This document shows positions 22,501 to 49,444 of a stretch of 64,000 bases of DNA, piece after piece; the stretch's first letter is position 1, and the number at the start of each line of letters is the position of its first letter. Source of the stretch: Ranitomeya imitator. Its lineage: Eukaryota. Location: positions 602,950,001-603,014,000 of the forward strand of contig NC_091283.1 of NCBI RefSeq assembly GCF_032444005.1. The letters are read 5' to 3'. A program made the translations under genes and the position numbers. Below the pieces are notes generated by a model. It ran no database searches. It was given only the letters and a program-made list of their open reading frames with translations, and had not been told where the DNA came from.

Positions 22501-24239
22501 TTAATGCTTTAGCTTCTCAATATCTGTATAAACAGTGCTGAGCCAGAACTTGCTTATACAGATTAGGAAGCAAGGATATTGTTTTCTCCTCAGGAGCCAG
22601 TGATCCTGTGATTGCTTAGTGAAGGGAGGAAACAGTAGGGCTGACTAGGGCTTCTATGATCCAACAGTTCCTATGTAGCCAGGAGGCTAAATTTCACTAC
22701 TACTGGGGCTAATATACAGGTGCGTCTCACAAAATTAGAATACCATCAAAAAGTTAATTTATTTCAGTTCTTCAATACAAAAAGTGAAACTCATATAGAG
22801 TCATTACAAACAGAGTGATTTATTTAAAGTGTTTATTTCTGTCAATGTTGATGATTATGGCTTACAGCTAATAAAAACCCAAAAGTCATTATCTCAGTAA
22901 ATTAGCGTAATTAACAAATAACACCTGCAAAGGCTTCCTAAGCTTTTAAAAAGGTCCCTTTGCCTGTTTCTGTAGGCTCCACAATCATGGGGAAGACGGC
23001 TGACTTAACAGATGATAGGACACACTCCACAGGGAGGGTAAGCCATGAAAGGTCATTGCTAAAGAAGCTGGCTGTTCACAAAGTGCTGTAGCATATTAAT
23101 GGAAAGTTGAGTGGAAGGAAAAGTGTATGTAACAACTCTGCTGGCATCACGGCATGGCCTCTCATCTCTCACACTATCTTACCCACTGCTCCAGGTCATG
23201 TTGCGGTTTCTGTTTCTAGCCAGTGCCATATTCTGTGCCTCTGCCCTCTGCATGCTTCCTGGCTGTGTGTATAATGGGACGGCGTCTGAACTCTCTGGTT
23301 CTTATAGGAATCAGGTGCACCTGTCTAATCTGTTCCTGACTAGTGTTGAGCGATACCTTCCGATATCGGAAAGTATCGGTATCGGATAGGATCGGCCGAT
23401 ATTCAAAAAATATCGGATATCGCCGATACCGATACCCGATCCCAATGCAAGTCAATGGGACCAAAATATCGGAATTAAAATAAACCCTTTCTTGCCTTGT
23501 AGGTTCATTCTACATGAAGGAAAACAACTAAGAATAATGCCGGATGTATTTGGGGAGGTGGCGGAGACATTAAAGTCATAGAGGTTTATCCCAATCAAAT
23601 AGAATAGCATGTTTTTTTTTTTTTTTAAGACGTTCGGAGTGACAAAGATATTGACTATGTACATTTTTTTTTTATTTTGTCAGATATTGATGTTTCACTA
23701 TTCCACGCCCTTCCCCTTCTTTTTTTTCTTTTTTTTTTTCTTTTCCCACACTTTCATCTTCATCATCATCAGCATCTTTGACATCAACTTCTTCTTCACC
23801 TTATTCATCTTCTTCTTCATCCTTTACCTTTTTTTTTTTTTTTATTACATTCTTCATATTCATTTTATTCAACTATTATTATTCTTCCTATTCTACATAT
23901 TCTTTTTATTCCACTGTTATTATTCTTCCTATTCTACTTCTTCATCATATTCTCATTTGTGACAGGCATTCCCGTAGTTGTTATCTATAAAAGTTGGAAG
24001 ATTACACCTTCTGTTCTGCCAGTCACAAAAGTTACATTTGTCCGCGTTCAGTTTGGCCTGCAGCATCAGGCTTTATCCAGGGGCACCACGAGGAGGAACG
24101 GACTCACCCCCATACACTGCTTAGTCTTCTTCTGCATATAATTTAGATAATATCTTTTGCTCTGATATTAAGTCTTATGCTTAATGTTCTTCTGCTCTTT
24201 GTTATGCAGCCTCTTGTTCTTCTGCTTCTCGGTCTTCCA

Positions 24240-24415
24240 TGTCGTCGTCTCCAGGGTCGTCGTCTCCAGTGTCGTCATCTCCGCCGTCGTCGTCTCAGCC
24301 GTCGTCGTCTCCGCCGTCGTCGTCTCCGCCGTCGTCGTCTCCGCCGTCGTCGTCATCGGGGTGGTCTTCCGGGTCGTCGTCGTCGTCATCGGGGTGGTCT
24401 TCCGGGTCGTCGACT
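24240..24415. repeat. 15-bp GTCGTCGTCTCCGCC-type short tandem repeat inside the hAT
   Basis: Tandem GTCGTCGTCTCC(G/A)(C/G)(C/T) units are directly visible. Confidence 0.9.
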
Positions 24416-24469
24416 TTAGGGTCTTCAACTTGGAAATGTAGCAGAAGGTACAAGAAGGCTGAGAAAATG

Positions 24470-27400
24470 CCAAGAACCAGCTGATGGAACTGGAACTCGG
24501 ATGGCTACCCGAAGGTTCAAGAGCCTATGGAACTACCGAGGACCAGCTGACGTTACTGGAACCCGGTTACTAAGCAGGAGGTACCCGTGCTAAAAAGCAC
24601 TACCAAGGACCGCCTGACGTTGGCGGAACTCGGATACCCAGAAGGAGGCACCTAAGCCAAAGGCTCTGCCCGGAACCAGCTGACGGTACTGGAACCAGGA
24701 TGGGGAGCAGAAGGTACAAGAGCAAAAGACACTGCCGAGAACCAGCTGACGGTACTGGAACCCGGATGGGTAGCCGAAGGTCCAAGAGCCAATGGAACTA
24801 CCGAGGACCAGCTGACGTTACTGGAACCCGGTTACTAAGCAGGAGGTACCCGTGCCCGAAAGCACTACCAAGGACCACCTGACGTTGGTGGAACTTGGAT
24901 ACCCAGAAGGAGGCACCTAAGCCAAAGGCTCTGCCCAGAACCAGCTGACGTTGTCAAGGTAAAAATATATGTCTTTATACACTTTTGTACTTTTATATAT
25001 TCTTATGCTGTGAAACAATAAGTTTTTCCCTTCGCTTGCTAATGCAAATTTAACTGTATTTAAGATGGCTGCCAGTATTCACTTTTGCCTTAGTTTTTGT
25101 ACTTGCCAAGAATCTACTTTCGTTTCTGAAGCTAAAGTATCGTTTCTGGAGAAATGGAAACTTAACAAGATGTGGACAAAGGAAGATTCATCAGATGATG
25201 TCATAGCCAATCAGAGGGACTGAATACTAGATACATTGCTTAAACCCCGCCTAACCCCGCCCTCTGCACACCTTCCCCCAATGGACTATATAATGTTATG
25301 TATATGAAATAAACAGTTCAGTTGCTGTGACGTTACACACGAGCGTGCAATGAGTTTGAACCAGCATTGTGTCTGACTCATTCTTATCCGGTACCAACAT
25401 GCTCCTAATCTGATTTGGAATGACTGTTGGATGAAGGGTATTGGCGTGACGACCCCGACAACGTTACTGGAACCAGGATGGGGAGCAGAAGGTACAAGAG
25501 CAAAAGACACTGCCGAGAACCAGCTGACGGTGCTGGAACCAGGTGGTGGACCTGAAGTCCCACAGGAGAGGAGAGAACAGCTAGGCCGCGAGGCAGCCGC
25601 AGTTACCGAACCCCAACAGTCCTACAGGGGGAGCTGGGCCTACTGGCACTACAGAACCAGCCTTGACTACCAGTTCACGCAGCCCACATAGGAAGCTCCT
25701 AAACTGGAGGCACCCTGGAGTTGGCTAACCCGACAGCACCACGACGGGGCAAGCATAGGCGTCTCAGTGAGCTTGACACAACCCGGAAACAGCTGACGGT
25801 GCTGAAACCAGGCTTGGCACGAGGGAGTACCTGTGTCAAAAACACTGCCGAGAACCAGCTGGCGTTGCTGGAACCCAGATGCGTTGCCCCAGTGTGCAAG
25901 AGCCAATGGCACGACCGAGGACCAGCTGGCGGTGCTGGAACCCGGTTACTAAGCTGTAGGTGCCCGCGCTTAAAAGCACTACCAAGGACCGCCTGACGTT
26001 GGCGGAACTCGGATACCCAGGAGGAGGCACCTAAGCCAAAGGATCGGCCTGGAACCAGCTGACGGTGCTGGAACCAGGTGGTGGACCCGAAGGTCCACAG
26101 GAGAGGAGAGAACAGCTAGGCCGCGAGGCAGCCGCAGTTACCGAACCCCAACAGTCCTACAGGGGGAGCTGGGCCTACTGGCACTACAGAACCAGCCTTG
26201 ACTACCAGATCACGCAGCCCACATAGGAAGCTCCAAAACTGGAGGCACCCTGGAGTTGGCTAACCCGACCGCAACACGACGGGGCAAGCATAGGCGTCTC
26301 AGTGAGCTTGACACAACCCGGAAACAGCTGACGGTGCTGAAACCAGGCTTGGCACGAGGGAGTACCTGTGACAAGAACACTGCCGAGAACCAGCTGGCGG
26401 TGCTGGAACCCAGATGCGTTGCCCCAGTGTGCAAGAGCCAATGGCACCGAGGACCAGCTGGCGGTGCGGGAACCCGGTTACTAAGCTGTAGGTGCCCGCG
26501 CTTAAAAGCACTACCAAGGACCGCCTGGCGTTGGCGGAACTCGGATACCCAGGAGGAGGCACCTAAGCCAAAGGCTCGGCCTGGAACCAGCTGACGGTGC
26601 TGGAACCAGGTGGTGGACCCGAAGGTCCACAGGAGAGGAGAGAACAGCTAGGCCACGAGGCAGCCGCAGTTACCGAACCCCAACAGTCCTACAGGGGGAG
26701 CTGGGCCTACTGGCACTACAGAACCAGCCTTGACTACCAGTTCACGCAGCCCACATAGGAAGCTCCTAAACTGGAGGCACCCTGGAGTTGGCTAACCCGA
26801 CAGCACCACGACGGGGCAAGCATAGGCGTCTCAGTGAGCTTGACACAACCCGGAAACAGCTGACGGTGCTGAAACCAGGCTTGGCACGAGGGAGTACCTG
26901 TGACAAGAACACTGCCGAGAACCAGCTGGCGGTGCTGGAACCCAGATGCGTTGCCCCAGTGTGCAAGAGCCAATGGCACGACCGAGGACCAGCTGGCGGT
27001 GCTGGAACCCGGTTACTAAGCTGTAGGTGCCCGCGCTTAAAAGCACTACCAAGGACCGCCTGGCGTTGGCGGAACTCGGATACCCAGGAGGAGGCACCTA
27101 AGCCAAAGGCTCGGCCTGGAACCAGCTGACGGTGCTGGAACCAGGTGGTGGACCCGAAGGTCCACAGGAGAGGAGAGAACAGCTAGGCCGCGAGGCAGCC
27201 GCAGTTACCGAACCCCAACAGTCCTACAGGGGGAGCTGGGCCTACTGGCACTACAGAACCAGCCTTGACTACCAGTTCACGCAGCCCACATAGGAAGCTC
27301 CAAAACTGGAGGCACCCTGGATTTGGCTAACCCGACCGCAACACGACGGGGCAAGCATAGGCGTCTCAGTGAGCTTGACACAACCCGGAAACAGCTGACG

Positions 27401-30400
27401 GTGCTGAAACCAGGCTTGGCACGAGGGAGTACCTGTGACAAGAACACTGCCGAGAACCAGCTGGCGGTGCTGGAACCCAGATGCGTTGCCCCAGTGTGCA
27501 AGAGCCAATGGCACCGAGGACCAGCTGGCGGTGCTGGAACCCAGTTACTAAGCTGTAGGTGCCCGCGCTTAAAAGCACTACCAAGGACCGCCTGGCGTTG
27601 GCGGAACTCGGATACCCAGGAGGAGGCACCTAAGCCAAAGGCTCGGCCTGGAACCAGCTGACGGTGCTGGAACCAGGTGGTGGACCCGAAGGTCCACAGG
27701 AGAGGAGAGAACAGCTAGGCCACGAGGCAGCCGCAGTTACCGAACCCCAACAGTCCTACAGGGGGAGCTGGGCCTACTGGCACTACAGAACCAGCCTTGA
27801 CTACCAGTTCACGCAGCCCACATAGGAAGCTCCTAAACTGGAGGCACCCTGGAGTTGGCTAACCCGACAGCACCACGACGGGGCAAGCATAGGCGTCTCA
27901 GTGAGCTTGACACAACCCGGAAACAGCTGACGGTGCTGAAACCAGGCTTGGCACGAGGGAGTACCTGTGACAAGAACACTGCCGAGAACCAGCTGGCGGT
28001 GCTGGAACCCAGATGCGTTGCCCCAGTGTGCAAGAGCCAATGGCACGACCGAGGACCAGCTGGCGGTGCTGGAACCCGGTTACTAAGCTGTAGGTGCCCG
28101 CGCTTAAAAGCACTACCAAGGACCGCCTGGCGTTGGCGGAACTCGGATACCCAGGAGGAGGCACCTAAGCCAAAGGCTCGGCCTGGAACCAGCTGACGGT
28201 GCTGGAACCAGGTGGTGGACCCGAAGGTCCACAGGAGAGGAGAGAACAGCTAGGCCGCGAGGCAGCCGCAGTTACCGAACCCCAACAGTCCTACAGGGGG
28301 AGCTGGGCCTACTGGCACTACAGAACCAGCCTTGACTACCAGTTCACGCAGCCCACATAGGAAGCTCCAAAACTGGAGGCACCCTGGATTTGGCTAACCC
28401 GACCGCAACACGACGGGGCAAGCATAGGCGTCTCAGTGAGCTTGACACAACCCGGAAACAGCTGACGGTGCTGAAACCTGGCTTGGCACGAGGGAGTACC
28501 TGTGACAAGAACACTGCCGAGAACCAGCTGGCGGTGCTGGAACCCAGATGCGTTGCCCCAGTGTGCAAGAGCCAATGGCACCGAGGACCAGCTGGCGGTG
28601 CTGGAACCCGGTTACTAAGCTGTAGGTGCCCGCGCTTAAAAGCACTACCAAGGACCGCCTGGCGTTGGCGGAACTCGGATACCCAGGAGGAGGCACCTAA
28701 GCCAAAGGCTCGGCCTGGAACCAGCTGACGGTGCTGGAACCAGGTGGTGGACCCGAAGGTCCACAGGAGAGGAGAGAACAGCTAGGCCGCGAGGCAGCCG
28801 CAGTTACCGAACCCCAACAGTCCTACAGGGGGAGCTGGGCCTACTGGCACTACAGAACCAGCCTTGACTACCAGTTCACGCAGCCCACATAGGAAGCTCC
28901 TAAACTGGAGGCACCCTGGAGTTGGCTAACCCGACAGCACCACGACGGGGCAAGCATAGGCGTCTCAGTGAGCTTAACACAACCCAGAAACAGCTGACGG
29001 TGCTGAAACCAGGCTTGGCACGAGGGAGTACCTGTGTCAAAAACACTGCCGAGAACCAGCTGGCGTTGCTGGAACCCAGATGCGTTGCCCCAGTGTGCAA
29101 GAGCCAATGGCACGACCGAGGACCAGCTGGCGGTGCTGGAACCCGGTTACTAAGCTGTAGGTGCCCGCGCTTAAAAGCACTACCAAGGACCGCCTGACAT
29201 TGGCGGAACTCGGATACCCAGGAGGAGGCACCTAAGCCAAAGGCTCGGCCTGGAACCAGCTGACGGTGCTGGAACCAGGTGGTGGACCCGAAGGTCCACA
29301 GGAGAGGAGAGAACAGCTAGGCCGCGAGGCAGCCGCAGTTACCGAACCCCAACAGTCCTACAGGGGGAGCTGGGCCTACTGGCACTACAGAACCAGCCTT
29401 GACTACCAGTTCACGCAGCCCACATAGGAAGCTCCAAAACTGGAGGCACCCTGGATTTGGCTAACCCGACCGCAACACGATGGGGCAAGCATAGGCGTCT
29501 CAGTGAGCTTGACACAACCCGGAAACAGCTGACGGTGCTGAAACCTGGCTTGGCACGAGGGAGTACCTGTGACAAGAACACTGCCGAGAACCAGCTGGCG
29601 GTGCTGGAACCCAGATGCGTTGCCCCAGTGTGCAAGAGCCAATGGCACCGAGGACCAGCTGGCGGTGCTGGAACCCGGTTACTAAGCTGTAGGTGCCCGC
29701 GCTTAAAAGCACTACCAAGGACCGCCTGGCGTTGGCGGAACTCGGATACCCAGGAGGAGGCACCTAAGCCAAAGGCTCGGCCTGGAACCAGCTGACGGTG
29801 CTGGAACCAGGTGGTGGACCCGAAGGTCCACAGGAGAGGAGAGAACAGCTAGGCCGCGAGGCAGCCGCAGTTACCGAACCCCAACAGTCCTACAGGGGGA
29901 GCTGGGCCTACTGGCACTACAGAACCAGCCTTGACTACCAGTTCACGCAGCCCACATAGGAAGCTCCTAAACTGGAGGCACCCTGGAGTTGGCTAACCCG
30001 ACAGCACCACGACGGGGCAAGCATAGGCGTCTCAGTGAGCTTGACACAACCCGGAAACAGCTGACGGTGCTGAAACCAGGCTTGGCACGAGGGAGTACCT
30101 GTGTCAAAAACACTGCCGAGAACCAGCTGGCGTTGCTGGAACCCAGATGCGTTGCCCCAGTGTGCAAGAGCCAATGGCACGACCGAGGACCAGCTGGCGG
30201 TGCTGGAACCCGGTTACTAAGCTGTAGGTGCCCGCGCTTAAAAGCACTACCAAGGACCGCCTGACATTGGCGGAACTCGGATACCCAGGAGGAGGCACCT
30301 AAGCCAAAGGCTCGGCCTGGAACCAGCTGACGGTGCTGGAACCAGGTGGTGGACCCGAAGGTCCACAGGAGAGGAGAGAACAGCTAGGCCGCGAGGCAGC

Positions 30401-31790
30401 CGCAGTTACCGAACCCCAACAGTCCTACAGGGGGAGCTGGGCCTACTGGCACTACAGAACCAGCCTTGACTACCAGTTCACGCAGCCCACATAGGAAGCT
30501 CCTAAACTGGAGGCACCCTGGAGTTGGCTAACCCGACAGCACCACGACGGGGCAAGCATAGGCGTCTCAGTGAGCTTGACACAACCCGGAAACAGCTGAC
30601 GGTGCTGAAACCAGGCTTGGCACGAGGGAGTACCTGTGACAAGAACACTGCCGAGAACCAGCTGGCGGTGCTGTAACCCAGATGCGTTGCCCCAGTGTGC
30701 AAGAGCCAATGGCACCGAGGACCAGCTGGCGGTGCTGGAACCCGGTTACTAAGCTGTAGGTGCCCACGCTTAAAAGCACTACCAAGGACCGCCTGGCGTT
30801 GGCGAAACTCGGATACCCAGGAGGAGGCACCTAAGCCAAAGGCTCGGCCTGGAACCAGCTGACGGTGCTGGAACCAGGTGGTGGACCCGAAGGTCCACAG
30901 GAGAGGAGAGAACAGCTAGGCCGCGAGGCAGCCGCAGTTACCGAACCCCAACAGTCCTACAGGGGGAGCTGGGCCTGCTGGCACTACAGAACCAGCCTTG
31001 ACTACCAGTTCACGCAGCCCACATAGGAAGCTCCTAAACTGGAGGCACCCTGGAGTTGGCTAACCCGACAGCACCATGACGGGGCAAGCATAGGCGTCTC
31101 AGTGAGCTTGACACAACCCGGAAAGAGCTGACGGTGCTGAAACCAGGCTTGGCACGAGGGAGTACCTGTGTCAAAAACACTGCCGAGAACCAGCTGGCGT
31201 TGCTGGATCCCAGATGCGTTGCCCCAGTGTGCAAGAGCCAATGGCACGACCGAGGACCAGCTGGCGGTGCTGGAACCCGGTTACTAAGCTGTAGGTGCCC
31301 GCGCTTAAAAGCACTACCAAGGACCGCCTGACGTTGGCGGAACTCGGATACCCAGGAGGAGGCACCTAAGCCAAAGGCTCGGCCCGGAACCAGCTGACGG
31401 TGCTGGAACCAGGTGGTGGACCCGAAGGCCCACAGGAGAGGAGAGAACAGCTAGGCCGCGAGGCAGCCACAGTTACCGAACCCCAACAGTCCTACAGGGG
31501 GAGCTGGGCCTACTGGCACTACAGAACCAGCCTTGACTACCAGTTCACGCAGCCCACATAGGAAGCTCCTAAACTGGAGGCACCCTGGAGTTGGCTAACC
31601 CGACCGCAACACGACGGGGCAAGCATAGGCGTCTCAGTGAGCTTGACACTACCCGGAAACAGCTGACGGTGCTGGAACCAGGTTTGGCACGAGGGAGTAC
31701 CAGTGACAAAAACACTGCCGAGAACCAGCTGGCGGTGCTGGAACCCAGATGCGTTGCCTATTAAAGATTGTCTTCCTAGAGCCCCAACTA
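24470..31790. repeat. Satellite array of about 533-bp units (about 12 homogeneous units from about 25520, with degenerate 265-bp precursors at 24470-24951)
   Basis: Equivalent positions recur at 25667, 26202, 26734, 27269, 27801, 28336, 28868, 29403, 29935, 30470, 31002 and 31537. Each unit is four about 66-bp subrepeats (CAGCTGRCGGTGCTGGAACC) plus about 267 bp. Confidence 0.97.
24952..25460 (+). mobile_element. Solo LTR (ERV/Gypsy type), 509 bp, inserted in the satellite
   Basis: TGTCAAGG...CCCCGACA termini. 4-bp TSD ACGT (24948-51, 25461-64) splits a CAGCTGACGTTACTGGAACC motif. Contains CCAAT, two CCCCGCC GC boxes, TATATAA (about 25287) and AATAAA (about 25308) in order. Confidence 0.9.
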
Positions 31791-34700
31791 GCGGTGCTGG
31801 AGCAAAGGGTAAGCAGGGGGAGCAGAGTGTAGGCCGAAGCCTGCACTGGAGGCAGCTTTGTGTCAGCGTTGCGTTTGCAGGACACTTTGCCGGCTACACA
31901 GTGTGGGAACAGCTGGCGTTGCTGAACCCCACTAACACAATGGCGGGTGTTTTTCTCTGTGCAGCTAGCACTTGCGGGCAAAAACTTGCGATGTTAGAGC
32001 CCGTGGTGAAGCAGGAGGAGGAGGAGAGGAGCAGAGTGTAGGCCGAAGCCTAGTTGAACCAATTTCAAAGGAAACCTTTAACCCCCCCTCAGGTGTTACA
32101 AACTACAAGAGACACACCTTGTGCAGTATTAATGCTGCACAAGTGAAAGGTTGCTCTATTAATTTGTCTACTTGCACACGCTGAATGAAAGACGTACACA
32201 ATTTAGCCCATTCTACAGTCAAACTGTAGTGGATGCGTGACTTGGCTTTTTAAGGAGACGCAGCACAGGTGTCCCAAATAACGCCTTGGTGCTTGGCGCA
32301 GCTTCCTGAGCGTTGTTATTTGCTGTACAGGAGTCTGCGCTCTTGTGTTATCCCTTGGCAATGCCCTGTTAGAGCTGCCCGTCTTATGACCTCATTTCAT
32401 GTTGGCCGGTGCGGTTAACGATGGCCATAAATCCCAGACCCACAGTGCCTTTTCATAAAGTCACACTGCGGTGCTGGGATTCGTGGCCTTGAGCAGTAAA
32501 TATTTTGGCCGCTCACACACGTCCTTACACCTGCTTCAGACTGGGCGGCCTCTGCTGATCCCTTCTCGCATGCCGCGGCCATGAGGCTGCACAGTCTGAA
32601 GAAGGCGGAAGGAGATGAGTTAAGACAGGCGAAGATATGCACTGCTCGTGCCCATCAATCACACCCTCGCAGTCAAAATATATGAGACAACGAGGGGCGT
32701 TGTGTCGGGCAGGGCGGACGCACAGGCACAGCCAGCCAACCAATGATGTCAGAAGACGGGCAGCGCTAACAATGGGGGTGCTGCGTGTCATTAGAAAGGA
32801 AAGTCACACCTCAGGGACAGTGGAATGGTCTCTAATGAGACACATTTTGTACGTGTTGAGTTCCACGTGGGCAAGGAGAAAAAGTCAGCCACCTTGTACA
32901 AATGCAGCAGTACTGCTGTACAAGGTGGCTGTTATACATAGAAACACCTGGGGGGGTGGGGCCAGGTTCCCTTTAATTTCAGTTCATGTGCCTGCGTGGT
33001 GTTTGCAGGTCAAGTTGCCGGCTACACAGCAGGGGAACAGCTGGCGGTGCTGAACCCCACTGACACATTGTCTGGTGTTTTTCTCTGTGCAGCTAGCACT
33101 TCCGGGCAGAAACTGGAGGTGTTTGAGCCCAGGGTCAGCAGGAGGAGGAGAGGAGCAGAGTGTAGGCCGAAGCCTGCACTGGTGGCAGCTTTTGGTCGGT
33201 TGTGCCAGCGTGGCTTGTGCTGGACACGATGTCGGCTACACAGCAGGGGAACAGCTGGCGGTGCTGAACCCCACTAACACATTGGCTGGTGTTTTTCTCT
33301 GTGCAGCTAGCATGTCCGGGCAGAAACTGGCGGTGTTTGAGCCCAGGGTCAGCAGGAGGAGGAGAGGAGCAGAGTGTAGGCCAAAGCCTGCACTGGTGGC
33401 AGCTTTTGGTCGGTTGTGCCAGCGTGGCTTGTGCTGGACACGATGTCGGCTACACAGCAGGGGAACAGCTGGCGGTGCTGAACCCCACTAACACATTGGC
33501 TGGTGTTTTTCTCTGTGCAGCTAGCATGTCCGGGCAGAAACTGGCGGTGTTTGAGCCCAGGGTCAGCAGGAGGAGGAGAGGAGCAGCGTGTAGGCCGAAG
33601 CCTGCACTGGTGGCAGCTTTTGGTCGGTTGTGCCAGCGTGGCTTGTGCTGGACACGATGTCGGCTACACAGCAGGGGAACAGCTGGCGGTGCTGAACCCC
33701 ACTAACACATTGGCTGGTGTTTTTCTCTGTGCAGCTAGCATGTCCGGGCAGAAACTGGCGGTGTTTGAGCCCAGGGTCAGCAGGAGGAGGAGAGGAGCAG
33801 AGTGTAGGCCGAAGCCTGCACTGGTGGCAGCTTTTGGTCGGTTGTGCCAGCGTGGCTTGTGCTGGACACGATGTCGGCTTCACAGCAGGGGAACAGCTGG
33901 CGGTGCTGAACCCCACTAACACATTGGCTGGTGTTTTTCTCTGTGCAGCTAGCATGTCCGGGCAGAAACTGGCGGTGTTTGAGCCAAGGGTCAGCAGGAG
34001 GAGGAGAGGAGCAGAGTGTAGGCCGAAGCCTAGTTGAACCAATTTCAAAGGTAACCTTTAACCCCCCCTCAGGTGTTGCAAGGTACAAGAGCCACACCTT
34101 GAACTGCAATAATGATGCACAAGTCAAAGGTTGCTCTCTTAATTTTGCTCCTTGCACACGCTGAATAAAACACGTACACTATTTAGCCCATTATACTGTC
34201 AAACAGTAGTGGAGGCGTGACTTGTCTTTTTAAGGAGACGCAGCACAGGTGTACAAATTTACACCTAGGTGCTGGGCGCAGATTCCTTACCGTTGTTATT
34301 TGCAGTACAGGAAACTGCGCTCTTGTGTTATCCCTTGGCAATACCCTGTTAGTGCAGGCCGTCTCATGACCTCATTTCATGTTGGCCGGTGCGGTTAACG
34401 ATGGCCATAAATCCCAGACCCACAGTGCCTTTTCCTAAAGTCACACTGCGGTGCTGGGATTCGTGGCCTTGTGCAGTAAATATGTCCGCCGCTCACACAT
34501 GTCCTTACACCTGCTTCAGACTGGGCGGCCTCAGCTGATCCCTTATCGCATGCCTCGGCCATGAGGCCGCACAGTCAGAAGAAGGCGGAAGGAGGGGAGT
34601 GAAGACAGGGGAACATATGCACTGCTCGTGCCCATCAATCACACCCTCGCAGTCAAAATATATGAGACAACGAGGGGCGTTGTGTCGGGCAGGGCGGACG

Positions 34701-37700: not shown

Positions 37701-39670
37701 AGGAGGCAGCGCACGGTGCCAAGGGGGTAGCAATGACGGCTGTGCTGCGTCACATTACAAAGGAAAGTCCCACCTCCGGGACGGTTGGACGGTGTGAGGG
37801 GACACATTACATGAGTGTGTAGTTCAGCGTTTGCAAGGAGCATAATTTCAAGAGCGACCTTTCCCTTGTGCAGTATTAGTGCTGCACATGGTGGCTCTTT
37901 CAGTAACAAACGCCTGGGGGGGGGGGGGGGACAGGTCCCCTTACATTTTAGTTGTGCCAGCGTGGCGGTCGCATGACACGTTGCCGGATACACAGCTGGG
38001 GATCAGCTGACGTTACTGAACCCCAATAACAGAGGAGCGACTGTTGACTGTGCACACAGCACTTCCAGGCACCAACTGGCGGTGTTAGAGCCCAGGGACA
38101 GCAGGAGGAGCAGATTGGAGGTATTGCTGCACACACAGCTGGGGATCAGCTGATGTTACTGAACCCCAATAACAGAGGAGCGACTGTTGACTGTGCACAC
38201 AGCACTTCCAGGCACCAACTGGCAGTGTTAGAGCCCAGGGACAGCAGGAGGAGCAGATTGGAGGTATTGCCGCACACACAGCTGGGGATCAGCTGAAGTT
38301 ACTGAACCCCAATAACAGAGGAGTGACTGTTGACTGTGCACACAGCACTTCCAGGCACCAACTGGCGGTGTTAGAGCCCAGGGACAGCAGGAGGAGCAGA
38401 GGAACAGAGTGTAGGCCGAAGCCTGATTGGATCAAGTTGAAAGGGAACCTTTAACCCCCCCCCAAGACGTTTGTAGCTGAAAGAGCCATCTTGTGCAGCA
38501 CTAACGATGCAAAAGGAAAAGGTGGTTCTTTTAATTATACTCCTTGCAAACACCGAAGTAAACACTAAAAATGTGTCCCCTTATACCGTTAAACCGTCCC
38601 GGAGGTGCGAATTTCCTTCGTAATGGGACACAGCACAGCTGACATTCCTATCCCCTTGGTGCCGTGCGCTGCCTCCTCAGCGTTGTTTTAAGCTGTCACG
38701 GAGCCTGCTCTGTTCTGTTAGCCCTTGGCCATGCCCAATTAGCGCTGCCTGTCTTCTGACATAATTTGGTGTCAGGCTGTTACTGCCTGTGCGTCCACGC
38801 TGCTCCAGATCCCACCTCGCAGTCTCGTCCAACGTAATCCCACTGCGGGCCTTGGAACCATGGACATGCACAGTGCATATCCTCGACTCTCACTCCCCTC
38901 CTTCCCTCTTCTTCAGACTGTGCGGTGTCACGGCCGTGGCATGCTATTAGGGATCAGCTGACGGCGCACAGTCTAAAGAAGGCGGAGGGAAATGAGCGAG
39001 AGCCCGAGGGGAAGATATGCACTGCGCATGGCCATGGATCCCAGGCCCGCAGTGTGACTCAATCAGAAGACACAGCGAGGCGGGATCTCGGGCAGCGCGG
39101 CCGCACAGGCGCAGCCAGCCTGACACCAAACTATGTCAGAAGACAGGCAGCGCAAATAGGGCATGCCCAAGGGATAACAGAACAGCGCAGGCTCCGTGAC
39201 AGCTTAAAACAACGCTGAGGAGGCAGCGCATGGCACCAAGGGGGTAGGAATGACGGCTGTGCTGCGTCACATTGCGAAGGAAAGTCCCAGCTCCGGGACA
39301 GTATAACGGTATCAGTGAACACATTTTATAAGTGTTAAGTTCTGCGTGTGCAAGGAGCTAAAAAAAAAGAGCTACCTTTTCCTTGTGCAGCATTACTGCT
39401 GCACAAGATGGCTCTTTCAGTAACAAACGACGGGGGGGGGGACAGGTTCCCTTACATTTAGGTTGTTGTGCCAGCGTGGCGGTCGCAGGACACATTGCCG
39501 GCTACACAGCTGGGGATCAGCTGACGTTACTGAAACCCAATAACACTGGGTCGTATGTTTTTACTGTGCAGCCTGCACTTCTGAGCCGCAACTGGCGGTG
39601 TTGGAGCCCAGGAATTGCAGTTCAGGTGGTAGAAAGATGAACACAGCAGGAGACCTGGATGACACCCAAT
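31790..39670. repeat. Long-period tandem array (about 0.9-kb core plus a variable number of 214-bp or 137-bp subunits) inside the hAT
   Basis: Anchor GGCCGAAGCCT... at 32041, 34021, 35574, 36899 and 38414 (spacings 1980, 1553, 1325, 1515). 214-bp period seen at 33075/33289/33503/33717/33931 and 137-bp period at 37948/38085. Confidence 0.9.
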
Positions 39671-39673
39671 TAC

Positions 39674-42600
39674 TTAATCAGGCAGAGGAGTGGCAAATTC
39701 CTGCGAGATCCAGGCCTGGTTCATTTTCAGAAAAGTAAGCCGGTCAACGTTATCGGAGGATAGTTGCATGCGACGGTCTGTTAGTACACCACCTGCGGCA
39801 CTAAAGACACGTTCCGATAAGACACTAGCCGCAGGGCAAGCCAGCACCTCCAATGCATACTGGCTTAGCTCTGGCCATGTATCCAGCTTAGAGACCCAAA
39901 ACTTGAACGGGGAAGAGCCGTCTGGGAGTACAGTAAGAGGGCAAGCCATGTAGTCTGTCACCATCTGACGGAACCGTTGCCTCCTGCTGACTGGAGCCGC
40001 CGGTGATGGTGTAGACATTTGGGGCAGGCACACAAAAGTGTGCCAGAGTTGTGCCATACTGGGCTTGCCTTGGGCAGAGGCACTGCTTCTGCTCCCTCTT
40101 TGGGCAGAGCCTCCCCCACTGCCTCGACGCACTGAGCTGCTTTGTAAAGCACTAGCAGCACTCCTCTCAGTTGGACAGGAGAAGATGATGGAATTCACCA
40201 GTGTGTCGTGGTACTCCCGCAATTTACGCTCCCGGGTCAACGCAGGGATGAGGTTTTGGACGTTGTCCCGGTAGCGAGGATCGAGGAGGGTGAACACCCA
40301 ATAATCAGGCATGTTGAGAATGTGGTCGATGCGGCGGTCGTTTCTCAGGCACTGCAGCATGAAATCCACCATGTGCTGCAGAGTGCCAACTGGCCCAGAA
40401 ACGCTGTCCCCTGCTTGAGACATGATCTCTGCCCGCTCGTCATCACCCCACCCTCGCTGTACACACTGACCACTGGACAATTGTGTCGCTCCCTCCTCTG
40501 GAAGGAGCTCTTCCTCCTCCATTGACTCCTCCTCATCCTCCTCACAAATTGACCCCTGCGTACCCCTTTGTGAGGAACCACGTGGCGCTGACTCTCCAGA
40601 AGCTGATGGAAAAGGTGACTCCTCATCCTCCACCTCTTCCACAACATCATCCCTTAACCCTTGCAAAGTTTGCTGAAGCAGGCAGATAAGGGGGACAGTC
40701 ATGCTGACTAGTGCATCATCTGCACTTGCCATCCGCGTGGAATAATCAAAAGGACGCAAAACCTGGCAGACGTCCTTCATAGTGGCCCACTCTGTGGTTG
40801 TGAAGTCTGATCGGCGCTGACTGCGACTTCTTTGCGCCTGATGCAGCTGGTACTCCATAACTGCTTGCTGCTGCTCACACAACCGCTCCAACATATGTAA
40901 CGTGGAATTCCACCGGGTAGGTAGGTCACATATGATACGGTGTTCCGGAAGGCGGAATCGGCGCTGCAGAGCAGCAATGCGGGATCTGGCCAAGCTGGAA
41001 CGCCGCAAGTGAGCACACTCTAGGCGGACCTTGTGCAGCAGGGCATCAAGATCCGGATAGTCCCTCAGAAAACTCTGCACAAGCAAATTGAGCACATGTG
41101 CCAGACATGGGATGTGAGTGAGGTTGCCAAGGGCCAAAGCTGCCACCAGATTTCGGCCATTGTCACACATTACCATGCCTGGCTGGAGATTCGCTGGCAG
41201 TAACCACACATCGCTCTCCTGCTTGATGGCATTCCAGAGCTCCTGCGCTGTGTGGCTTCGATGCCCCAATGAAACTAGTTTCAAGACGGCCTGCTGACGT
41301 TTGGCCACGGCTGTGCTCATGTCGGTCATAGGTAAACGTTCACGGGTCCATGTGGAGGTGGACTGTGACGGATCCTGCAGAGAGGAATCTGAGGAACTGG
41401 TGTAAGAGGAGGAGTCGATGCGTACAGACTGGATTCCTGCAATCCTTGGAGTGGGCAGGATACGTCCTGCGCCACTCGCACGATCTGTACCTGGCTCAAC
41501 AACATTAACCCAATGGGCAGTGAGGGAAACATATCGCCCCTGTCCATGCTGACTGGTCCACGCATCGGTGGTGAGGTGGACCTTGCTACTGACGGCGTTC
41601 AGTAGCGCATGTTTTATGTTTGCCTCAACATGCCTGTGCAGGGCAGGGACAGCCTGCCTGCTGAAGTAAAAGCGGCTGGGCACCTTGTACTGTGGGACTG
41701 CCAATGCCATCAAGTCACGGAAGCTGTCAGTCTCCACCAGCCTGAACGAGAGCATTTCCAGGGACAACAGTTTGGCAATGCCTGCATTCAGAGCCTGTGC
41801 TCGGGGGTGGTTGGCCGAGAATGCCCGCCTTTTCTCCCATGCCTGTACTACCGATGGCTGTAGAGTAGACTGGGAGTGTGAGGATGACTGGGAAGGTGGT
41901 GCTGTGGGTGGAATTACACTAGGTCTCTGGACAACAGTGGAGGAAGAGGCAACACGAGATGAAGAGGTGGTAGCTGCCGCTGTTGGTTGGCCTACGTCTT
42001 CACTGTGTTTCTGTAACTCCACCACGTGCCTGGTCCGCACATGTTTCCACATATTTGTGGTATTGAGGTTGCTGACACTTTTACCTCTTTTTACTTTCTG
42101 ATGACACAGCTTGCATTTGACAAAACAAATGTCATCTGCAACTGTGTCAAAAAAGGACCAGGCACTGCAAGTCTTGGGAGCGCCCTTTTTGGCTTTGGAA
42201 AGAGACAGGCTCCTAACGGGTGCCAAAGTGGAGGCTACAGGCTCCGCAGTCTTCCCCCTCCCTCTCCCTCTTTGGCCCGTAAGGGGAAGCTCTTCCTCAG
42301 AGCTGCTCCCACCACCTTCCTGTTCCTCACGCCACGATGGGTCAAGGACCTCATCATCTCCACTACCCTCTGCCACCAACTGCTCCTCCTGGGTAGTCTC
42401 GGCAGCACAGTACGCATCAGAAAGCGGCACCTGAGTTTCATCATCAGATGCGTACTGCGCTGTGGTCACCGGATGCACTGGCCCACCTGCCTCTTCAGAG
42501 TCAGAGAGAAAAAGCTGTTGGGCATCACTGCACACTGCCTCTTCTTCCATTTCTCCAATGCTGCTTGGCTGGCCCCCTGTTTCCAAGCCAAGAGATTCAG

Positions 42601-42949
42601 AGAACAGAAGTAGAGACGGCTCCTGTCCTGGGCTCTCTGACTGCCTGGCCAATTTGGGAGGTGGTGAAGAGACAGATGGCTGCTCTCCAGTGCTCTGTGC
42701 CTGAGAGGATGTGGCACTAACTGAAGTCGATGCCGAGGCGTTAGCTGCCATCCACCCGACAACGGCTTCAATTTGGTCTTCACGCAGCAGCGGTGCACGG
42801 CGCTCTCCGACAAAGCTGCGCATGAAGGACTGTTCCCTGCTGAAACTGAGTGACGACGAGTCACCGGCGCCCGCAGCAGGCACAGAATCACCACGTCCTC
42901 TCCCTGCTCCGCGCCCATGCCCACGTGCCTTACTCCCTGCCCTCTTCAT
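39674..42949 (-). CDS. hAT (Ac-group, ZBED-like) transposase, 1091 aa, uninterrupted
   Basis: BED finger (WSFF...CKLC...TTNMWKHVRTRH), catalytic D in HLTTDAWTS, D in CDNGRN, CxxH in PCLAHVLNL, TRWNS, and C-terminal dimerisation region with catalytic E in ASVLSERVFS. Confidence 0.96.
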   Translation of the reverse strand: MKRAGSKARGHGRGAGRGRGDSVPAAGAGDSSSLSFSREQSFMRSFVGERRAPLLREDQIEAVVGWMAANASASTSVSATSSQAQSTGEQPSVSSPPPKLARQSESPGQEPSLLLFSESLGLETGGQPSSIGEMEEEAVCSDAQQLFLSDSEEAGGPVHPVTTAQYASDDETQVPLSDAYCAAETTQEEQLVAEGSGDDEVLDPSWREEQEGGGSSSEEELPLTGQRGRGRGKTAEPVASTLAPVRSLSLSKAKKGAPKTCSAWSFFDTVADDICFVKCKLCHQKVKRGKSVSNLNTTNMWKHVRTRHVVELQKHSEDVGQPTAAATTSSSRVASSSTVVQRPSVIPPTAPPSQSSSHSQSTLQPSVVQAWEKRRAFSANHPRAQALNAGIAKLLSLEMLSFRLVETDSFRDLMALAVPQYKVPSRFYFSRQAVPALHRHVEANIKHALLNAVSSKVHLTTDAWTSQHGQGRYVSLTAHWVNVVEPGTDRASGAGRILPTPRIAGIQSVRIDSSSYTSSSDSSLQDPSQSTSTWTRERLPMTDMSTAVAKRQQAVLKLVSLGHRSHTAQELWNAIKQESDVWLLPANLQPGMVMCDNGRNLVAALALGNLTHIPCLAHVLNLLVQSFLRDYPDLDALLHKVRLECAHLRRSSLARSRIAALQRRFRLPEHRIICDLPTRWNSTLHMLERLCEQQQAVMEYQLHQAQRSRSQRRSDFTTTEWATMKDVCQVLRPFDYSTRMASADDALVSMTVPLICLLQQTLQGLRDDVVEEVEDEESPFPSASGESAPRGSSQRGTQGSICEEDEEESMEEEELLPEEGATQLSSGQCVQRGWGDDERAEIMSQAGDSVSGPVGTLQHMVDFMLQCLRNDRRIDHILNMPDYWVFTLLDPRYRDNVQNLIPALTRERKLREYHDTLVNSIIFSCPTERSAASALQSSSVRRGSGGGSAQRGSRSSASAQGKPSMAQLWHTFVCLPQMSTPSPAAPVSRRQRFRQMVTDYMACPLTVLPDGSSPFKFWVSKLDTWPELSQYALEVLACPAASVLSERVFSAAGGVLTDRRMQLSSDNVDRLTFLKMNQAWISQEFATPLPD

Positions 42950-43139
42950 CTTGGTTGACAGATAAAGATAAGCAGAAAAGTACTAAGGCCTTAGCGTGCT
43001 TATTCCTGAAATGCTCCTTCTAACAGGTGTAAGAAACACTAATGTTGTAAAGTGTGGACTAAACTTTATTATTTTTCAAATATGGCCTACACAAGTGTTA
43101 AGTTGTGTTTGGTGAACTTTACTTTTTTTTTTGTGCAGA

Positions 43140-44250
43140 TCGGGCTACAGAGCTAGTTTAAATCACACGGAGACCGTGCAGACAGCCGTAAACGGCGCTG
43201 CAAGGCCAAGAAACCCTCCTCTAGGTTATCCTATGTAGTGTTTTTCCACTATTTAGCTGGAGACGGGTGGAAAGACACTAATAGGAATTTTTTTTTTTTA
43301 ATTTTAAACAGGCTGCACTATTTGAAAAAAAGGAAATTGTTTTTCAAGGTATGAGGCAGTAACGCACCCTGAGCTGAATCCAACCGGCTATGGCTGCACA
43401 CAGACTACAGGGCGAGCTGCGCTCACACAGAGACCGTGCAGACAGCCGTAAACGGCGCTGCAAGGCCAAAAAACCCTCCTCTAGGTTATCCTATGTAGTG
43501 TTTTTCCACTATTTAGCTGGAGACGGGTGGAAAGACACTAATAGGAATTTTTTTTTTTTAATTTTAAACAGGCTGCACTATTTGAAAAAAAGGAAATTGT
43601 TTTTCAAGGTATGAGGCAGTAACGCACCCTGAGCTGAATCCAACCGGCTATGGCTGCACACAGACTACAGGGCGAGCTGGGCTCACACGGAGACCGTGCA
43701 GACAGCCGTAAACGGCGCTGCAAGGCCCAAAAACCCCCCTCTAGGTTATCCTATGTAGTGTTTTTCCACTATTTAGCTGGAGACGGGTGGAAAAACACTA
43801 ATAGGGATTTTTTTTTTTAATTTTTAAACAGGCTGCACTATTTGAAAGAAAGGAAAATTTTTCTCAAGGTATGAGCCAGTAACGAACCCTGAGCTGAATC
43901 CAACCGGTTATGGCTGCACACAGACTACAGGGCGAGCTGGGCTCACACGGAGACCGTGCAGACAGCCGTAAACGGCGCTGCAAGGCCCAAAAACCCCCCT
44001 CTAGGTTATCCTATGTAGTGTTTTTCCACAATTTAGCTGGAGACGGGTGGAAAAACACTAATAGGAAATTTGAGAAAAAATGTGCAGCAGGCTGCACTAT
44101 GAGCAAAAAATGACAACTGTGTGAGGCAGTGTGAACCCCCCCTGAGCTGAATACAACCGGGTATATGGCTGCACACAGACTACAGAGTGAGCTGCACACA
44201 CACACACACACACACAGAGACCTTGCAGAATGCTGTTAAAACAGCGCTGC
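43140..44250. repeat. 260-bp tandem repeat (about 4.3 copies) upstream of the hAT transposase ATG
   Basis: AGACCGTGCAGACAGCCGTAAACGGCGCTGCAAGG recurs at 43171, 43431, 43691 and 43951, with a degenerate copy at about 44218. Confidence 0.93.
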
Positions 44251-44394
44251 AAGGCAAGAGCAAGGTGAACAGTGAAGAACACACAGCGTTTTGCTAAATT
44301 AGCCTTTGGAAAGGAAAATAAAGCAATTAGCTAGCTCAACTGGCCCTCAGTTAGAACACAGCGTCCTGTCCCTAACTGAAATCACAGCAGAGTG

Positions 44395-44455
44395 AGCGCA
44401 AAATGGCGGCAGCGTTTTTTATAGTGCAGAGTGACATCATTTCAGCAGCCAATCA
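44395..44455 (-). promoter_or_regulatory. Candidate Pol II promoter of the hAT transposase
   Basis: In minus orientation: CCAAT box (44449-53), CRE-like TGATGTCA (44432-39), TATAAAA (44417-23), then a YY1-like GCCGCCATTTT. Located about 250 bp inside the 5' TIR. Confidence 0.5.
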
Positions 44456-47416
44456 CAGCCTTGCCAGTACTTACATGCCCACCATGCTAAACAGGATGTG
44501 CCCACACTTCCAATCATTCCTCATTGGCTGCTGCGTTCTGTTTGAATTCTGGGAACTTCCGATTCCGGTATCCGATACGCGGGAAGTATCGGAATTCGGT
44601 ATCGGAATTCCGATACCGCAAATATCGGCCGATACCCGATACTTGCGGTATCGGAATGCTCAACACTATTCCTGACCAATTATCAAGAGGCCTCCAGTAT
44701 TTAGTGCAGCTCCACCCAGTGGACTGGGCCTGTGCAATGTGTTAGTTCAGTTTGTGTTTAGCTTCTGAGTTTGCCAGGCCTTGCTCTGTGTTACTCCCTC
44801 TCTGGAGGCTTTTCTCTTTGCCTTGATCTTGCTGTCTGCCCTCCAGGAGGCAGAATATCCTGGTCCCTGTGTCTTTGTCCTTGTGTCTTGTTCCATTGCC
44901 TTGTCTGTACTTAGTCTTATTTCGTTCTCCTTATCTGTGGCTTCCTTCCCTGCTGTGTCTTTCCTTGTGTTCTCAGTTTGCTTTTGCTCCGCACTCTTGC
45001 GGCTCTGCCTGCTCTGTAGCTTTGTGGCTTTACCTCTGCTCTGCACTCCTGCGGTTCTGCTCCGTTCTGCTCTGCTGCTACAGTAATCTCTTGCTGCAGC
45101 TCCTCTCCGCATTCCTTGCGGTTCTACTCTGCTTAAGCTTCTGCAGTAATCTCTTGCTGCAGCTCCTCTCCACACTCCTTGTGGCTCTGCTCTGCTTAGC
45201 TCCTGCGGCTGCAGTAATCTCTTGCTGCAGCTCCTCTCCACATTCCTTGTGGCTCTGCTCTGCTTAGCTTCTGCGGCTGCAGTAATCCCTTGCTGTAGTT
45301 CCTCTCCATATTCCTTGTGGTTCTGCTCTGCTTTGCCGCTGCAGAAATCTCTTGCTGCAGCTCCTCTCCATATTCCTTGTGGTTCTGCTCTGCTTAGGTT
45401 TTATTGCTGCGCTATCTCTTGCTGCTATACCGCTCCTGTCTGCAGCCTTGCGGTTCTCTTCCTGTGTGAACAGGTCCCAACCTGTTCCTTCATTCACCTT
45501 TCCTTCTGGCTTGTTTCCTTTCCTGCACCTCCTGTGTGAACAGGTTCCTACCTGTTCATTCATACTACATATCCATACCAGCACCTCCTGTGTGAACAGG
45601 TCCCTACCTGTTCATTCATACACCACACCTTCATACACCGTTCCTGCCAGTCCTGTGTTCTCTGCCATGTTCCTGCCAGCCCTGTGTTCTCTGCCGTGTT
45701 CCTGCCAGCCCTGTGTTCTCTGCCGTGTTCCTGCCAGCCCTGTGTTCTCTGCCGTGTCTCTGCCAGCTCTGTGTCTCAGCCGTGCCAGCCTACTCATCTG
45801 AATCTCATCCGTGCTCATATGCTAGTCCTGCCTGATGCCCGCACCAATCCTAGTGTTCCTGTCTCCCAAATGGGATCAGCAGCCACAGCCAGACACCACC
45901 CTGGAGTAGCACCTGGCAGCTGCCTGCTGCACAAGCCTGACCTCACCATCAGAGGCTCCAGTGAAAACCCAGGCAGCTGTCAAAGTCACGCCCCTTCCAG
46001 GGTAGTCTGGTTTGTGGCACAGTGGGGCCACAGACCCCCCGAGCTCACGCCCACCAGTCAGGGCGTGAACGTGACAGTGTGGTAGAAAAAGGTACACAAG
46101 CAACAGGGATAACAGCAGCCTTGAAAGGATTGTAAAGAAAAGGACATTAAACAATTTGGGGGAGATTCATAAGGAGTAGGCTGCTGCTGGAGTCATTGCT
46201 TCAAGATCCACCACACACAGATGTAGCCAGGACATGGGCTGCCTACAAGTGTTGCATTCCTTGTGTCAAGCCACTCATGACCAAAAGACAACACCAGAAA
46301 GCATCTTACCTGGGCCAAGGAGAAAAAGAACTGGTGTTGTTTTCAGATGAAAGTAAATTTTGCATTTCATTTGGAAATCAAGGTCCCAGCATCTGAAGGA
46401 AGAGTGGAGAGGCCACAATCCAAGTTGCTTGAGGTCTAGTGTGAAGTTTCCACAATCAGTGATGATTTGGGGAGCCATGTTAACTGCTGGTGTAGGTACA
46501 CTGTGTTTTATCAAGATCAAAGTCAGCACAGCCATCCACCAAGAAATTTTAGAGTACTTCATGCTTCCCTCTGCCAACAAACTTTTTTGAGATGGAACTT
46601 ACATTCTCCAGCAGGACTTGGCACCTGTCCACACTGCCAAAGGTACCAATACCTGGTTTAAAAACAGCATCACTGTGCTTGATTGGCTGGCAAACTCGCC
46701 TGACATTAACTCCATGGAGAATCTATGGGGCATTGTCAAGAGGAAGATGAGAGACACCAGACCCAACCACCAGAAGCAACCTGGGCTTCCATAACACCTC
46801 AGCAGTGCCACAGGCTGATCGTCTCCATGCCATGATGCATTGATGCAGTAATTGATGCAAAAGGAGCTCCTACCAAGTACTGAGTGCATTTACTGAACAT
46901 ACATTTCAGTAGGCCAACATTTCAGATTTTAAAATAATTTTTCAAGCTGGTGTTATAAAGTATTCTAATTTACTGAGATAATGACTTTTGGGTTTTCATT
47001 GGCTGTAAGCCATAATCATCCACATTAACAGAAATAAACACTTGAAATAGGTCACTCTGTTTGTAATGACTCTATATAATATATGAGTTTCACTTTTTGT
47101 ATTGAAGAACTGAAATAAATTAACTTTTTAATTATATTCAAATTTTGTGAAAAGCACCTGTATCAGGGAAATCTGCAGTAAAAAGAATGTAATAATACGC
47201 TAAAAAGGTCCCCTAAAGGTCTTTAAGACCTCATGGGGACACAGCGTGTAAAAAAATGAAATAAAAATATTAAGTTCAATGAAAATATTGAAAAAAAAAC
47301 CATATACCTAAATAAAATAAAAGAGAGAAATCACCATCAGATTCGCTGTTTCTGGCACCACCCCATCTAAAAAAATATGTCCAATATATAAAGATAATTT
47401 TTATGGAAAGGGAAAC

Positions 47417-49324: not shown

Positions 49325-49444
49325 TAGAGATGAGCGGTGTTCGAGTCGAACTGTTTGCCAATTTCAAATTTGAGCTGTTTTGGGAGTTGTTCGAGTCGTT
49401 TGACAAACTCGAACAATTTGCTTAAAATTCGACTGTTTTTTTTT

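Follow-up and report, generated by a model that had tools for sequence, protein, structure and literature searches.

We analysed a 64-kb stretch of the genome of the frog Ranitomeya imitator, hereafter the window, and found that 21.3 kb of it (positions 23341-44668) is a single bounded, autonomous BED-zinc-finger hAT transposon of a frog-specific lineage, whose predicted mobility is read from the integrity of its sequence. Tandem repeats total about 15.8 kb, or about 74% of the element, close to the roughly 16 kb of arrays estimated in the initial annotation of this DNA, and the only recognisable gene is that of a hAT transposase. Taking all the evidence together, we give a probability of roughly three in four to the reading that an autonomous frog hAT, already giant at insertion, inserted here as a unit and that its interior had been overtaken by a satellite of its own making. 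As the initial annotation held, the element is several times larger than typical hATs (Hermes, about 3 kb; Tol2, about 4.7 kb; PMC10368747, PMC8151067).

The element is delimited on the left by an 11-bp terminal inverted repeat (TIR), TAGTGTTGAGC, on the plus strand at 23341-23351, and on the right by its exact reverse complement on the minus strand at 44658-44668, all 11 positions being complementary. Immediately outside lie two identical copies of an 8-bp target site duplication (TSD), TTCCTGAC, at 23333-23340 and 44669-44676. Immediately inside, the left subterminal region (23352-23480) carries nine TATCGG/CCGATA motifs in both orientations and the right one (44530-44657) carries eight. These motifs are strongly concentrated at the termini, with nine in the left 140 bp and eight in the right 140 bp compared to two across the 21-kb interior and 10 in the 42.7 kb of the window outside the element. 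By analogy with the subterminal repeats of Hermes (PMC10368747), they are presumed to be putative binding sites of the BED domain.

A blind scan for combinations of TIR and TSD over 100 x 100 end positions returned this pair alone. Likewise, an unbiased scan for 6-mers clustered in both orientations picked out both ends of the element, its other matches being tandem arrays and a small, unrelated repeat near 11.8 kb. This small repeat (11760-11970) is rich in AACGAT/ATCGTT palindromes, with 8 motifs in 150 bp, and is possibly the end of another DNA transposon or of a miniature inverted-repeat transposable element (MITE). No further perfect copy of the 11-mer TIR was found in the window, the sole near-match being a site with one mismatch at 52032, and no paralogous empty site was found within the same 64 kb. 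Because the two ends match, belong to the same family and are bordered by an 8-bp TSD, the sequence between them must have arrived as one unit. The matched TIRs, perfect TSD and subterminal repeats of the initial annotation were thus all confirmed. With T at position 2 and A at position 7, the TSD fits the consensus nTnnnnAn, the target preference reported for Hermes (PMC10368747), although a single insertion makes this weak evidence.

The inverted repeats found in the window include no long terminal inverted repeat of the element, of which the TIR measures 11 bp only. Scans for TIRs, for the subterminal motif and for 6-mer clusters revealed no second set of hAT ends inside it. We also observed a 168-bp inverted repeat of 91% identity (22745-22905 and 46965-47132) that flanks the hAT, its arms lying 0.4 kb and 2.3 kb away from the two termini; these arms may be the long inverted ends of another element of about 3 kb, into which the hAT would have inserted.

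The transposase gene is a single open reading frame (ORF) of 1091 aa without introns on the minus strand (39674-42949). The predicted protein comprises a 255-aa low-complexity N-terminal extension, a BED zinc finger (residues 263-308; Pfam zf-BED, E = 3e-8), the catalytic core and a hAT dimerisation domain (residues 1011-1075; Pfam Dimer_Tnp_hAT, PF05699, E = 7.7e-14, 51.7 bits against a cut-off of 21.4) that aligns to residues 435-506 of Hermes. It further aligns to Hermes over the second catalytic aspartate, the CxxH motif, the tryptophan of PTRWNST and the glutamate of SERxFS. In an alignment with 13 homologues, D462, D596, H618, W680 and E1046 are invariant, as are the zinc ligands C279, C282, H303 and H308, and C615 is nearly so. 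We take D462 to be the first catalytic aspartate from its TTDxWT motif and from the context of Hermes D180. The transposase announced as intact in the initial annotation is indeed so, with the BED cysteines and histidines, the DDE triad, the CxxH motif and the RW-type tryptophan all in place. Altogether, the element shows every hAT-defining feature that is open to a sequence test: the TSD, short TIRs, the dimerisation domain, the DDE core, and the BED finger together with subterminal motifs.

Relatives of the transposase are almost all from frogs. The closest is a protein of Ranitomeya variabilis, 85% identical over residues 21-1091 with the low-complexity N-terminus included, while homologues from other dendrobatids, leptodactylids, hylids, hyperoliids, megophryids and Xenopus share 32-55% identity; this pattern places the host among the dendrobatid poison frogs. 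An exact-protein look-up gave no record of an identical protein, and two metagenome scans, one with the transposase and one with the end sequence, gave no match. The contig of one relative (51% identity) carries neither ends nor arrays, but is short (4.4 kb). The closest relative, the R. variabilis protein (P0001), is 1296 aa long and annotated as ZBED6-like; its first 209 residues or so carry a KRAB domain, fused to the full hAT transposase. Either the gene model is a chimera with KRAB zinc-finger genes next to it, or host and transposase sequences are truly fused.

In gene orientation, the element consists of the right end, a 260-bp array, the transposase, macro-units A5-A4 and A3-A1, a 533-bp array, a 0.5-kb spacer, a 66/133/265-bp array, a 15-bp array, an AT-rich spacer and the left end. 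From the left, the AT-rich spacer (23481-24184; 34% GC) is rich in T runs and has no coding signal. It is followed by the 15-bp microarray, with about 10 copies of the GTCGTCGTCTCCGCC type (24185-24435), and by a founder-type array in which a 66-bp unit is organised into 133- and 265-bp higher-order repeats (24440-24952). Beyond a unique 0.5-kb spacer of 39% GC (24953-25461) lies the 6.3-kb 533-bp array (25462-31785), made of 12 monomers that each contain eight 66-bp subunits and are paired into a 1067-bp higher-order repeat. The following 7.8 kb (31786-39620) are covered by five macro-units of 1.5-2 kb. Macro-units A1-A3 (31786-36757) each join a 214-bp array (32987-34031, 34968-35584 and 36516-36878) to about 1 kb of non-array sequence, and the A4-A5 region (36758-39620) contains a 143-bp array (37981-38409). 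In addition, A4 and A5 each hold a palindrome of about 1 kb (36944-37921 and 38438-39456) with arms that are 80-84% complementary. In either orientation, both palindromes show 70% similarity to the sequence of A1-A3 outside the arrays, and they look like a fold-back element absorbed into the repeated unit. On the other side of the gene, 3.5 copies of a 260-bp unit (43145-44071) separate the right end from the transposase start codon.

The 12 monomers of 533 bp, the 1067-bp repeat and the five macro-units are the long head-to-tail arrays with higher-order structure by which satellite DNA is recognised. Among the periods listed in the initial annotation, those of 15, 66, 214, 260 and 533/1067 bp were found again, together with macro-units of 1.5-2 kb, whereas its 137-bp period was not, the real ones being 133 and 143 bp. 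Pfam searches with the two longest array ORFs and four shorter ones, and with the ORFs that run across the 15-bp array, yielded no match, which led us to reject coding cargo. A search against Rfam gave no match at gathering or permissive thresholds.

Our results indicate that the arrays on the downstream side of the gene are variants of one sequence. Autocorrelation of the left array gave peaks at 66, 133, 199 and 265 bp. In the 533-bp array, peaks at 532/535 and 1067 bp (identity of 0.993 at lag 1067) were accompanied by residual peaks at 133, 335, 402 and 468 bp. This ladder shows that 66, 133, 265, 533 and 1067 bp are successive doublings of one 66-bp unit. A 21-bp core was matched 43 times by a strict pattern, 55 times by a loose one and up to 81 times with other core patterns. 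All of these matches lie on the plus strand at 24-40 kb, with none in the 42.7 kb outside the element. Furthermore, a profile built from seven 66-bp units, in which the first 25 positions are the most conserved, matched the plus strand at 76 further sites, or about five times in each 533-bp monomer. The same core occurs in the 214- and 143-bp units, and the one unrelated array is that of 260 bp upstream of the gene. Since all copies of the satellite point the same way and none occurs elsewhere in the window, it looks resident rather than captured: judged from these sequence patterns, the arrays look like one satellite lineage that evolved inside the element from the 66-bp unit. The word cargo used in the initial annotation therefore does not describe what appears to be a single co-oriented lineage grown within the element.

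The core of the units of this lineage is an imperfect inverted repeat, predicted to fold on the minus strand into a two-tier stem-loop of about 31 nt (4-6 bp, an internal loop, 5 bp and a 7-nt loop). A covariance model gave 94 matches to it at E <= 5e-4, all on the minus strand and all within 24469-39619, with none elsewhere in the window; 14 of the 94 sites lie outside the training set, including the second hairpin of each 214-bp unit. The 260-bp array lacks this core. The inner stem occurs in the variants CAGC/GCTG, CGCC/GGCG, CACC/GGTG and CAAC/GTTG, that is, with paired changes on both sides.

We scored an 11-pair, two-tier hairpin on 33 distinct 40-nt windows selected by a pattern that does not require complementarity; the cells compared come from related sequences and are not independent events. 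On the minus strand, 87.3% of the cells were paired, a value reached by 0 of 500 shuffles (mean, 77.7%), compared to 75.5% on the plus strand. Doubly changed cells numbered 38 on the minus strand (shuffle mean, 12.4) and 33 on the plus strand. The covariation score was 0.420 on the minus strand (shuffles, 0.241; slid controls, at most 0.195) and 0.224 on the plus strand, and compensatory changes were seen in 7 of the 11 pairs. The strands differ because the minus strand has 43 G.U-type cells, spread over 9 of the 11 pairs, and the plus strand has none. An independent run of RNAalifold gave a hairpin of 4+4 pairs at -9.5 kcal/mol for the minus strand and three pairs at -0.45 kcal/mol for the plus strand. 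Moreover, all six divergent units tested gave the same minus-strand fold, with energies between -13.9 and -18.8 kcal/mol. On this strand, which is the sense strand for the transposase, the arrays follow the stop codon of the gene, and the nearest polyadenylation-like signal is reached 1.1 kb into them.

To place the growth of the arrays relative to the insertion, the divergence of repeat units was compared with the decay that the intact ORF allows. Simulations showed that the probability of the ORF remaining open falls below 0.05 above about 0.8% neutral divergence with an indel rate a tenth of the substitution rate, or above about 2.5-3% with substitutions only. Given an intact 3.3-kb ORF, units duplicated after insertion should differ by no more than about 1.6%, and at the very most by 6%. 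Most repeats exceed these values. The macro-units A1-A3 are 69-74% identical to A4-A5, A4 is 81% identical to A5, and A1-A3 are 88-91% identical among themselves. Unit identities are 57-92% for the 66-bp, 89-99% for the 214-bp, 92-97% for the 143-bp and 90-97% for the 260-bp repeats. The 533-bp array, in which the register alternates between 535 and 532 bp, has diverged edges (85-95%) and a uniform centre (97-100%, with two monomers identical to each other). Transversions make up 60% of the substitutions between units, a share too high for CpG decay to account for the divergence.

When all units linked at 98.4% identity or more are collapsed, the element shrinks by 5.4 kb to 15.9 kb; with the threshold lowered to 94%, it shrinks by 8.0 kb to 13.3 kb. 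Under the assumptions stated below, these figures are lower bounds because gene conversion only makes units look younger. The proposal of the initial annotation that the element moved at its present size is therefore supported in a weaker form: it was at least 13.3 kb (conservative) or at least 15.9 kb (realistic) long when it inserted, three to five times the usual size of a hAT, and not necessarily 21.3 kb. Up to 4.8-5.8 kb of the 533-bp array, its most uniform part, may have grown in place.

Several points weigh against an element that was already giant and carried a satellite of its own. The dating assumes that the ORF has been in neutral drift since insertion and that the arrays do not mutate much faster than the ORF; the whole analysis rests on one copy in one assembly; and the founding 66-bp unit may have arisen in the element or may be an ancient capture. 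In addition, the 97-100% identity of the central 533-bp monomers and the 99.3% uniformity of the 1067-bp repeat point to a very recent expansion or homogenisation, which could post-date insertion. This uniformity, like the known expansion of frog subtelomeric arrays by unequal exchange (PMC10794172), also fits a history in which a hAT of about 5 kb inserted and all arrays expanded at the locus later, so that the present size would say nothing of the reach of the transposase. We consider that history quite unlikely, as most repeat layers are 3-30% diverged, with 60% transversions, against an ORF limit of about 0.8-3%, and as stripping everything possibly young still leaves 13-16 kb. Expansion only after insertion, listed in the initial annotation as part of what would refute its proposal, runs against the internal dating, according to which 13-16 kb predates insertion. 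The same near-identical repeats raise the suspicion that the 533/1067-bp array was over- or under-collapsed, which would make the 21.3 kb unreliable, since identical and 99.3%-identical copies are where assemblers err. The window has no gaps, though, and diverged edges, a uniform centre and an alternating 535/532-bp register form a natural pattern; misassembly would in any case touch only about 5 kb and not the diverged layers, and we regard an artefact of this kind as very improbable.

The arrays could also be true foreign cargo, a host satellite captured when two hAT ends mobilised the genomic DNA between them as a macrotransposon or when an ancestral element inserted beside or into a satellite and took it up. 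They share no sequence with the ends or with the transposase gene, and the palindromes of about 1 kb resemble a nested fold-back, so that the interior has taken in foreign DNA on at least one occasion. Another hAT of the window, now decayed, is flanked on both sides by one satellite, as insertion into an existing array would look. Against capture, the core motif and the hairpin model have 0 matches in the 42.7 kb outside the element, 94 of 94 units share one orientation relative to the transposase gene, and there are no internal or extra hAT ends. The perfect TSD shows that the unit as it now stands moved in one piece, wherever its repeats first came from. We hold capture to be unlikely, and retain the reading of an autonomous hAT with a satellite grown at home.

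The transposase relic of the decayed hAT (51667-54412, plus strand) is frameshifted and 36-48% identical to the main transposase. It sits between arrays of the same orientation at 49441-50108 and 54734-55013, which belong to one 110/114-bp satellite whose unit has a 10-bp dyad of its own. No convincing pair of TIRs and TSDs was found for this relic at 51.6-54.4 kb, which may be a second satellite-bearing hAT or a hAT inserted into an array. Two further sets of tandem repeats were observed in the window. Arrays of 68/130 bp and 29 bp (45053-45784) start 0.4 kb beyond the right end of the element and do not match its satellites, and an unrelated 1.5-kb array at 16413-17918 contains 26 copies of a 57-bp unit, in 115-bp dimers with 92-93% matches.

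It is possible, though doubtful, that the arrays are a working part of the element, with the 94 co-oriented stem-loops kept by selection as an RNA element or as DNA hairpins. In its favour are the compensatory changes, the G.U cells on the sense strand, the hairpin being the most conserved part of the unit and the six divergent units folding alike. G.U-type pairs on one strand only are not predicted by DNA cruciforms alone. As RNA, a long transposase-sense transcript could act as a sponge for proteins or small RNAs, as a silencing decoy or as a source of regulatory small RNAs; as DNA, the hairpins could recruit a factor that helps a 20-kb element to synapse its ends. Identification of the hairpin as a tRNA arm, histone stem-loop, iron-responsive element (IRE) or other named RNA motif was rejected, as the loop sequences do not fit and Rfam gave no match.

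A mutational origin of the signal must be set against this. Short dyad symmetries are frequent in satellites (PMC5889037), where template-switch repair can keep them without function. The array substitutions, read on the plus strand, show an excess of G>A over C>T (50 vs 29, a 63:37 strand bias), and this bias alone would favour wobbles on the minus strand (0.63 to the ninth power, about 0.016). Together with quasi-palindrome template switching, it could yield much of the hairpin signal without function. The strictly oriented hairpin core is nonetheless a testable candidate for why the arrays persist and, in our view, the most interesting open point.

In the history that we favour, the element would have inserted as a unit by cut-and-paste, after a satellite arising within its lineage had taken over the non-coding interior, mostly 3' of the transposase gene. 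A 66-bp stem-loop unit would have doubled repeatedly, from 66 to 133, 265, 533 and 1067 bp, while the 66-bp lineage also diverged into the 214- and 143-bp variants, which presumably became bundled with a palindromic module of about 1 kb into macro-units of 1.5-2 kb. We infer that unequal exchange or replication slippage lengthens and shortens the arrays, between jumps as well as after insertion, and the hairpins may favour such events. hAT transposases act on the ends and tolerate long interiors. In experiments with Tol2, 10-11 kb are moved with undiminished efficiency and up to about 200 kb can be carried (PMC8151067). The arrays could thus persist as passengers, each move of the element taking a copy of them to a new site.

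An autonomous cut-and-paste element that was probably three-quarters satellite already when it jumped joins two classes of repeats that are usually counted apart. Each transposition would plant a ready-made array of several kilobases able to expand locally, and satellite seeding could then be traced copy by copy. The element is also a natural case in which to ask up to what size a hAT remains mobile.

With Ac, hobo, Hermes and Tol2 the element shares an 8-bp TSD of the nTnnnnAn type, short TIRs starting with TAG and asymmetric arrays of subterminal motifs (PMC10368747, PMC8151067), as well as a transposase with an N-terminal BED finger, a DDE core with CxxH and a conserved tryptophan, and a C-terminal hAT dimerisation domain. 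Unlike them, it spans 21.3 kb, consists of tandem repeats for about 74% and encodes an intronless transposase of 1091 aa. It does not belong to the known classes of giant elements (Starship, Teratorn, Maverick/Polinton, KDZ) either, as it has no recombinase, polymerase or viral genes and owes its size to repeats and not to gene cargo. Poison-frog genomes measure 6-13 Gb, and hATs make up about 4% of one of them (PMC11152451). The literature on dendrobatid genomes that we searched reports hAT abundance (3.9% of Dendrobates tinctorius; 255 Mb in Oophaga pumilio) and does not describe giant satellite-bearing hATs.

Among frog DNA transposons, FEDoR of Rana temporaria and the MITE miDNA4-Xt of Xenopus tropicalis likewise have inverted repeats, TSDs and an interior made of several tandem-repeat motifs, and the authors who described them suggested that elements of this kind disperse tandem repeats and contribute to genome-size growth (PMC12054243). 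FEDoR (about 3.5 kb; assigned to no superfamily) and miDNA4 (0.3-0.6 kb) are both non-autonomous, without an ORF, and have short units of 22 bp and similar (PMC12054243). In contrast to FEDoR, the element described here is autonomous and six times larger, with higher-order repeats of up to 1067 bp and 2-kb macro-units. The Xenopus laevis element 1723, attributed to Kay and Dawid in 1983, is said to measure 6-10 kb and to have short inverted ends, 8-bp target duplications and a length that varies through internal tandem repeats. Of the composite elements Tx1D and Tx2D, attributed to Garrett, Knutzon and Carroll in 1989, Tx1D reportedly carries variable numbers of internal tandem repeats of about 400 bp; it is said to have TTAA targets and to be piggyBac-like, not a hAT. 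Both 1723 and Tx1D would be early frog examples of DNA transposons with internal arrays able to expand. To our knowledge, no intact transposase, higher-order period doubling or conserved hairpin has been described for 1723 or Tx1D.

Outside frogs, the internal tandem repeats of the DNA transposon Tetris of Drosophila virilis similarly serve as building blocks of satellites (PMC4079207). Tetris and Galileo are fold-back or P-type elements in which long inverted ends hold the repeats, whereas the ends here measure 11 bp and the arrays are central and run in one direction. An identity of this fold-back type was rejected, as the termini share only 11 bp and scattered 6-bp motifs while the arrays are internal and in one orientation. 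The hairpin-bearing units resemble the dyad-symmetric satellites of Kasinathan and Henikoff (2018; PMC5889037), which contain dyads shorter than 10 bp and predicted non-B DNA; those satellites are centromeric, whereas the dyads here lie in a mobile element and show compensatory changes. Frog DNA transposons with internal tandem repeats are thus already known, and what is new here is the 21-kb scale with 74% repeat, the autonomy, a hierarchy doubled from a single unit and an oriented, covarying hairpin core.

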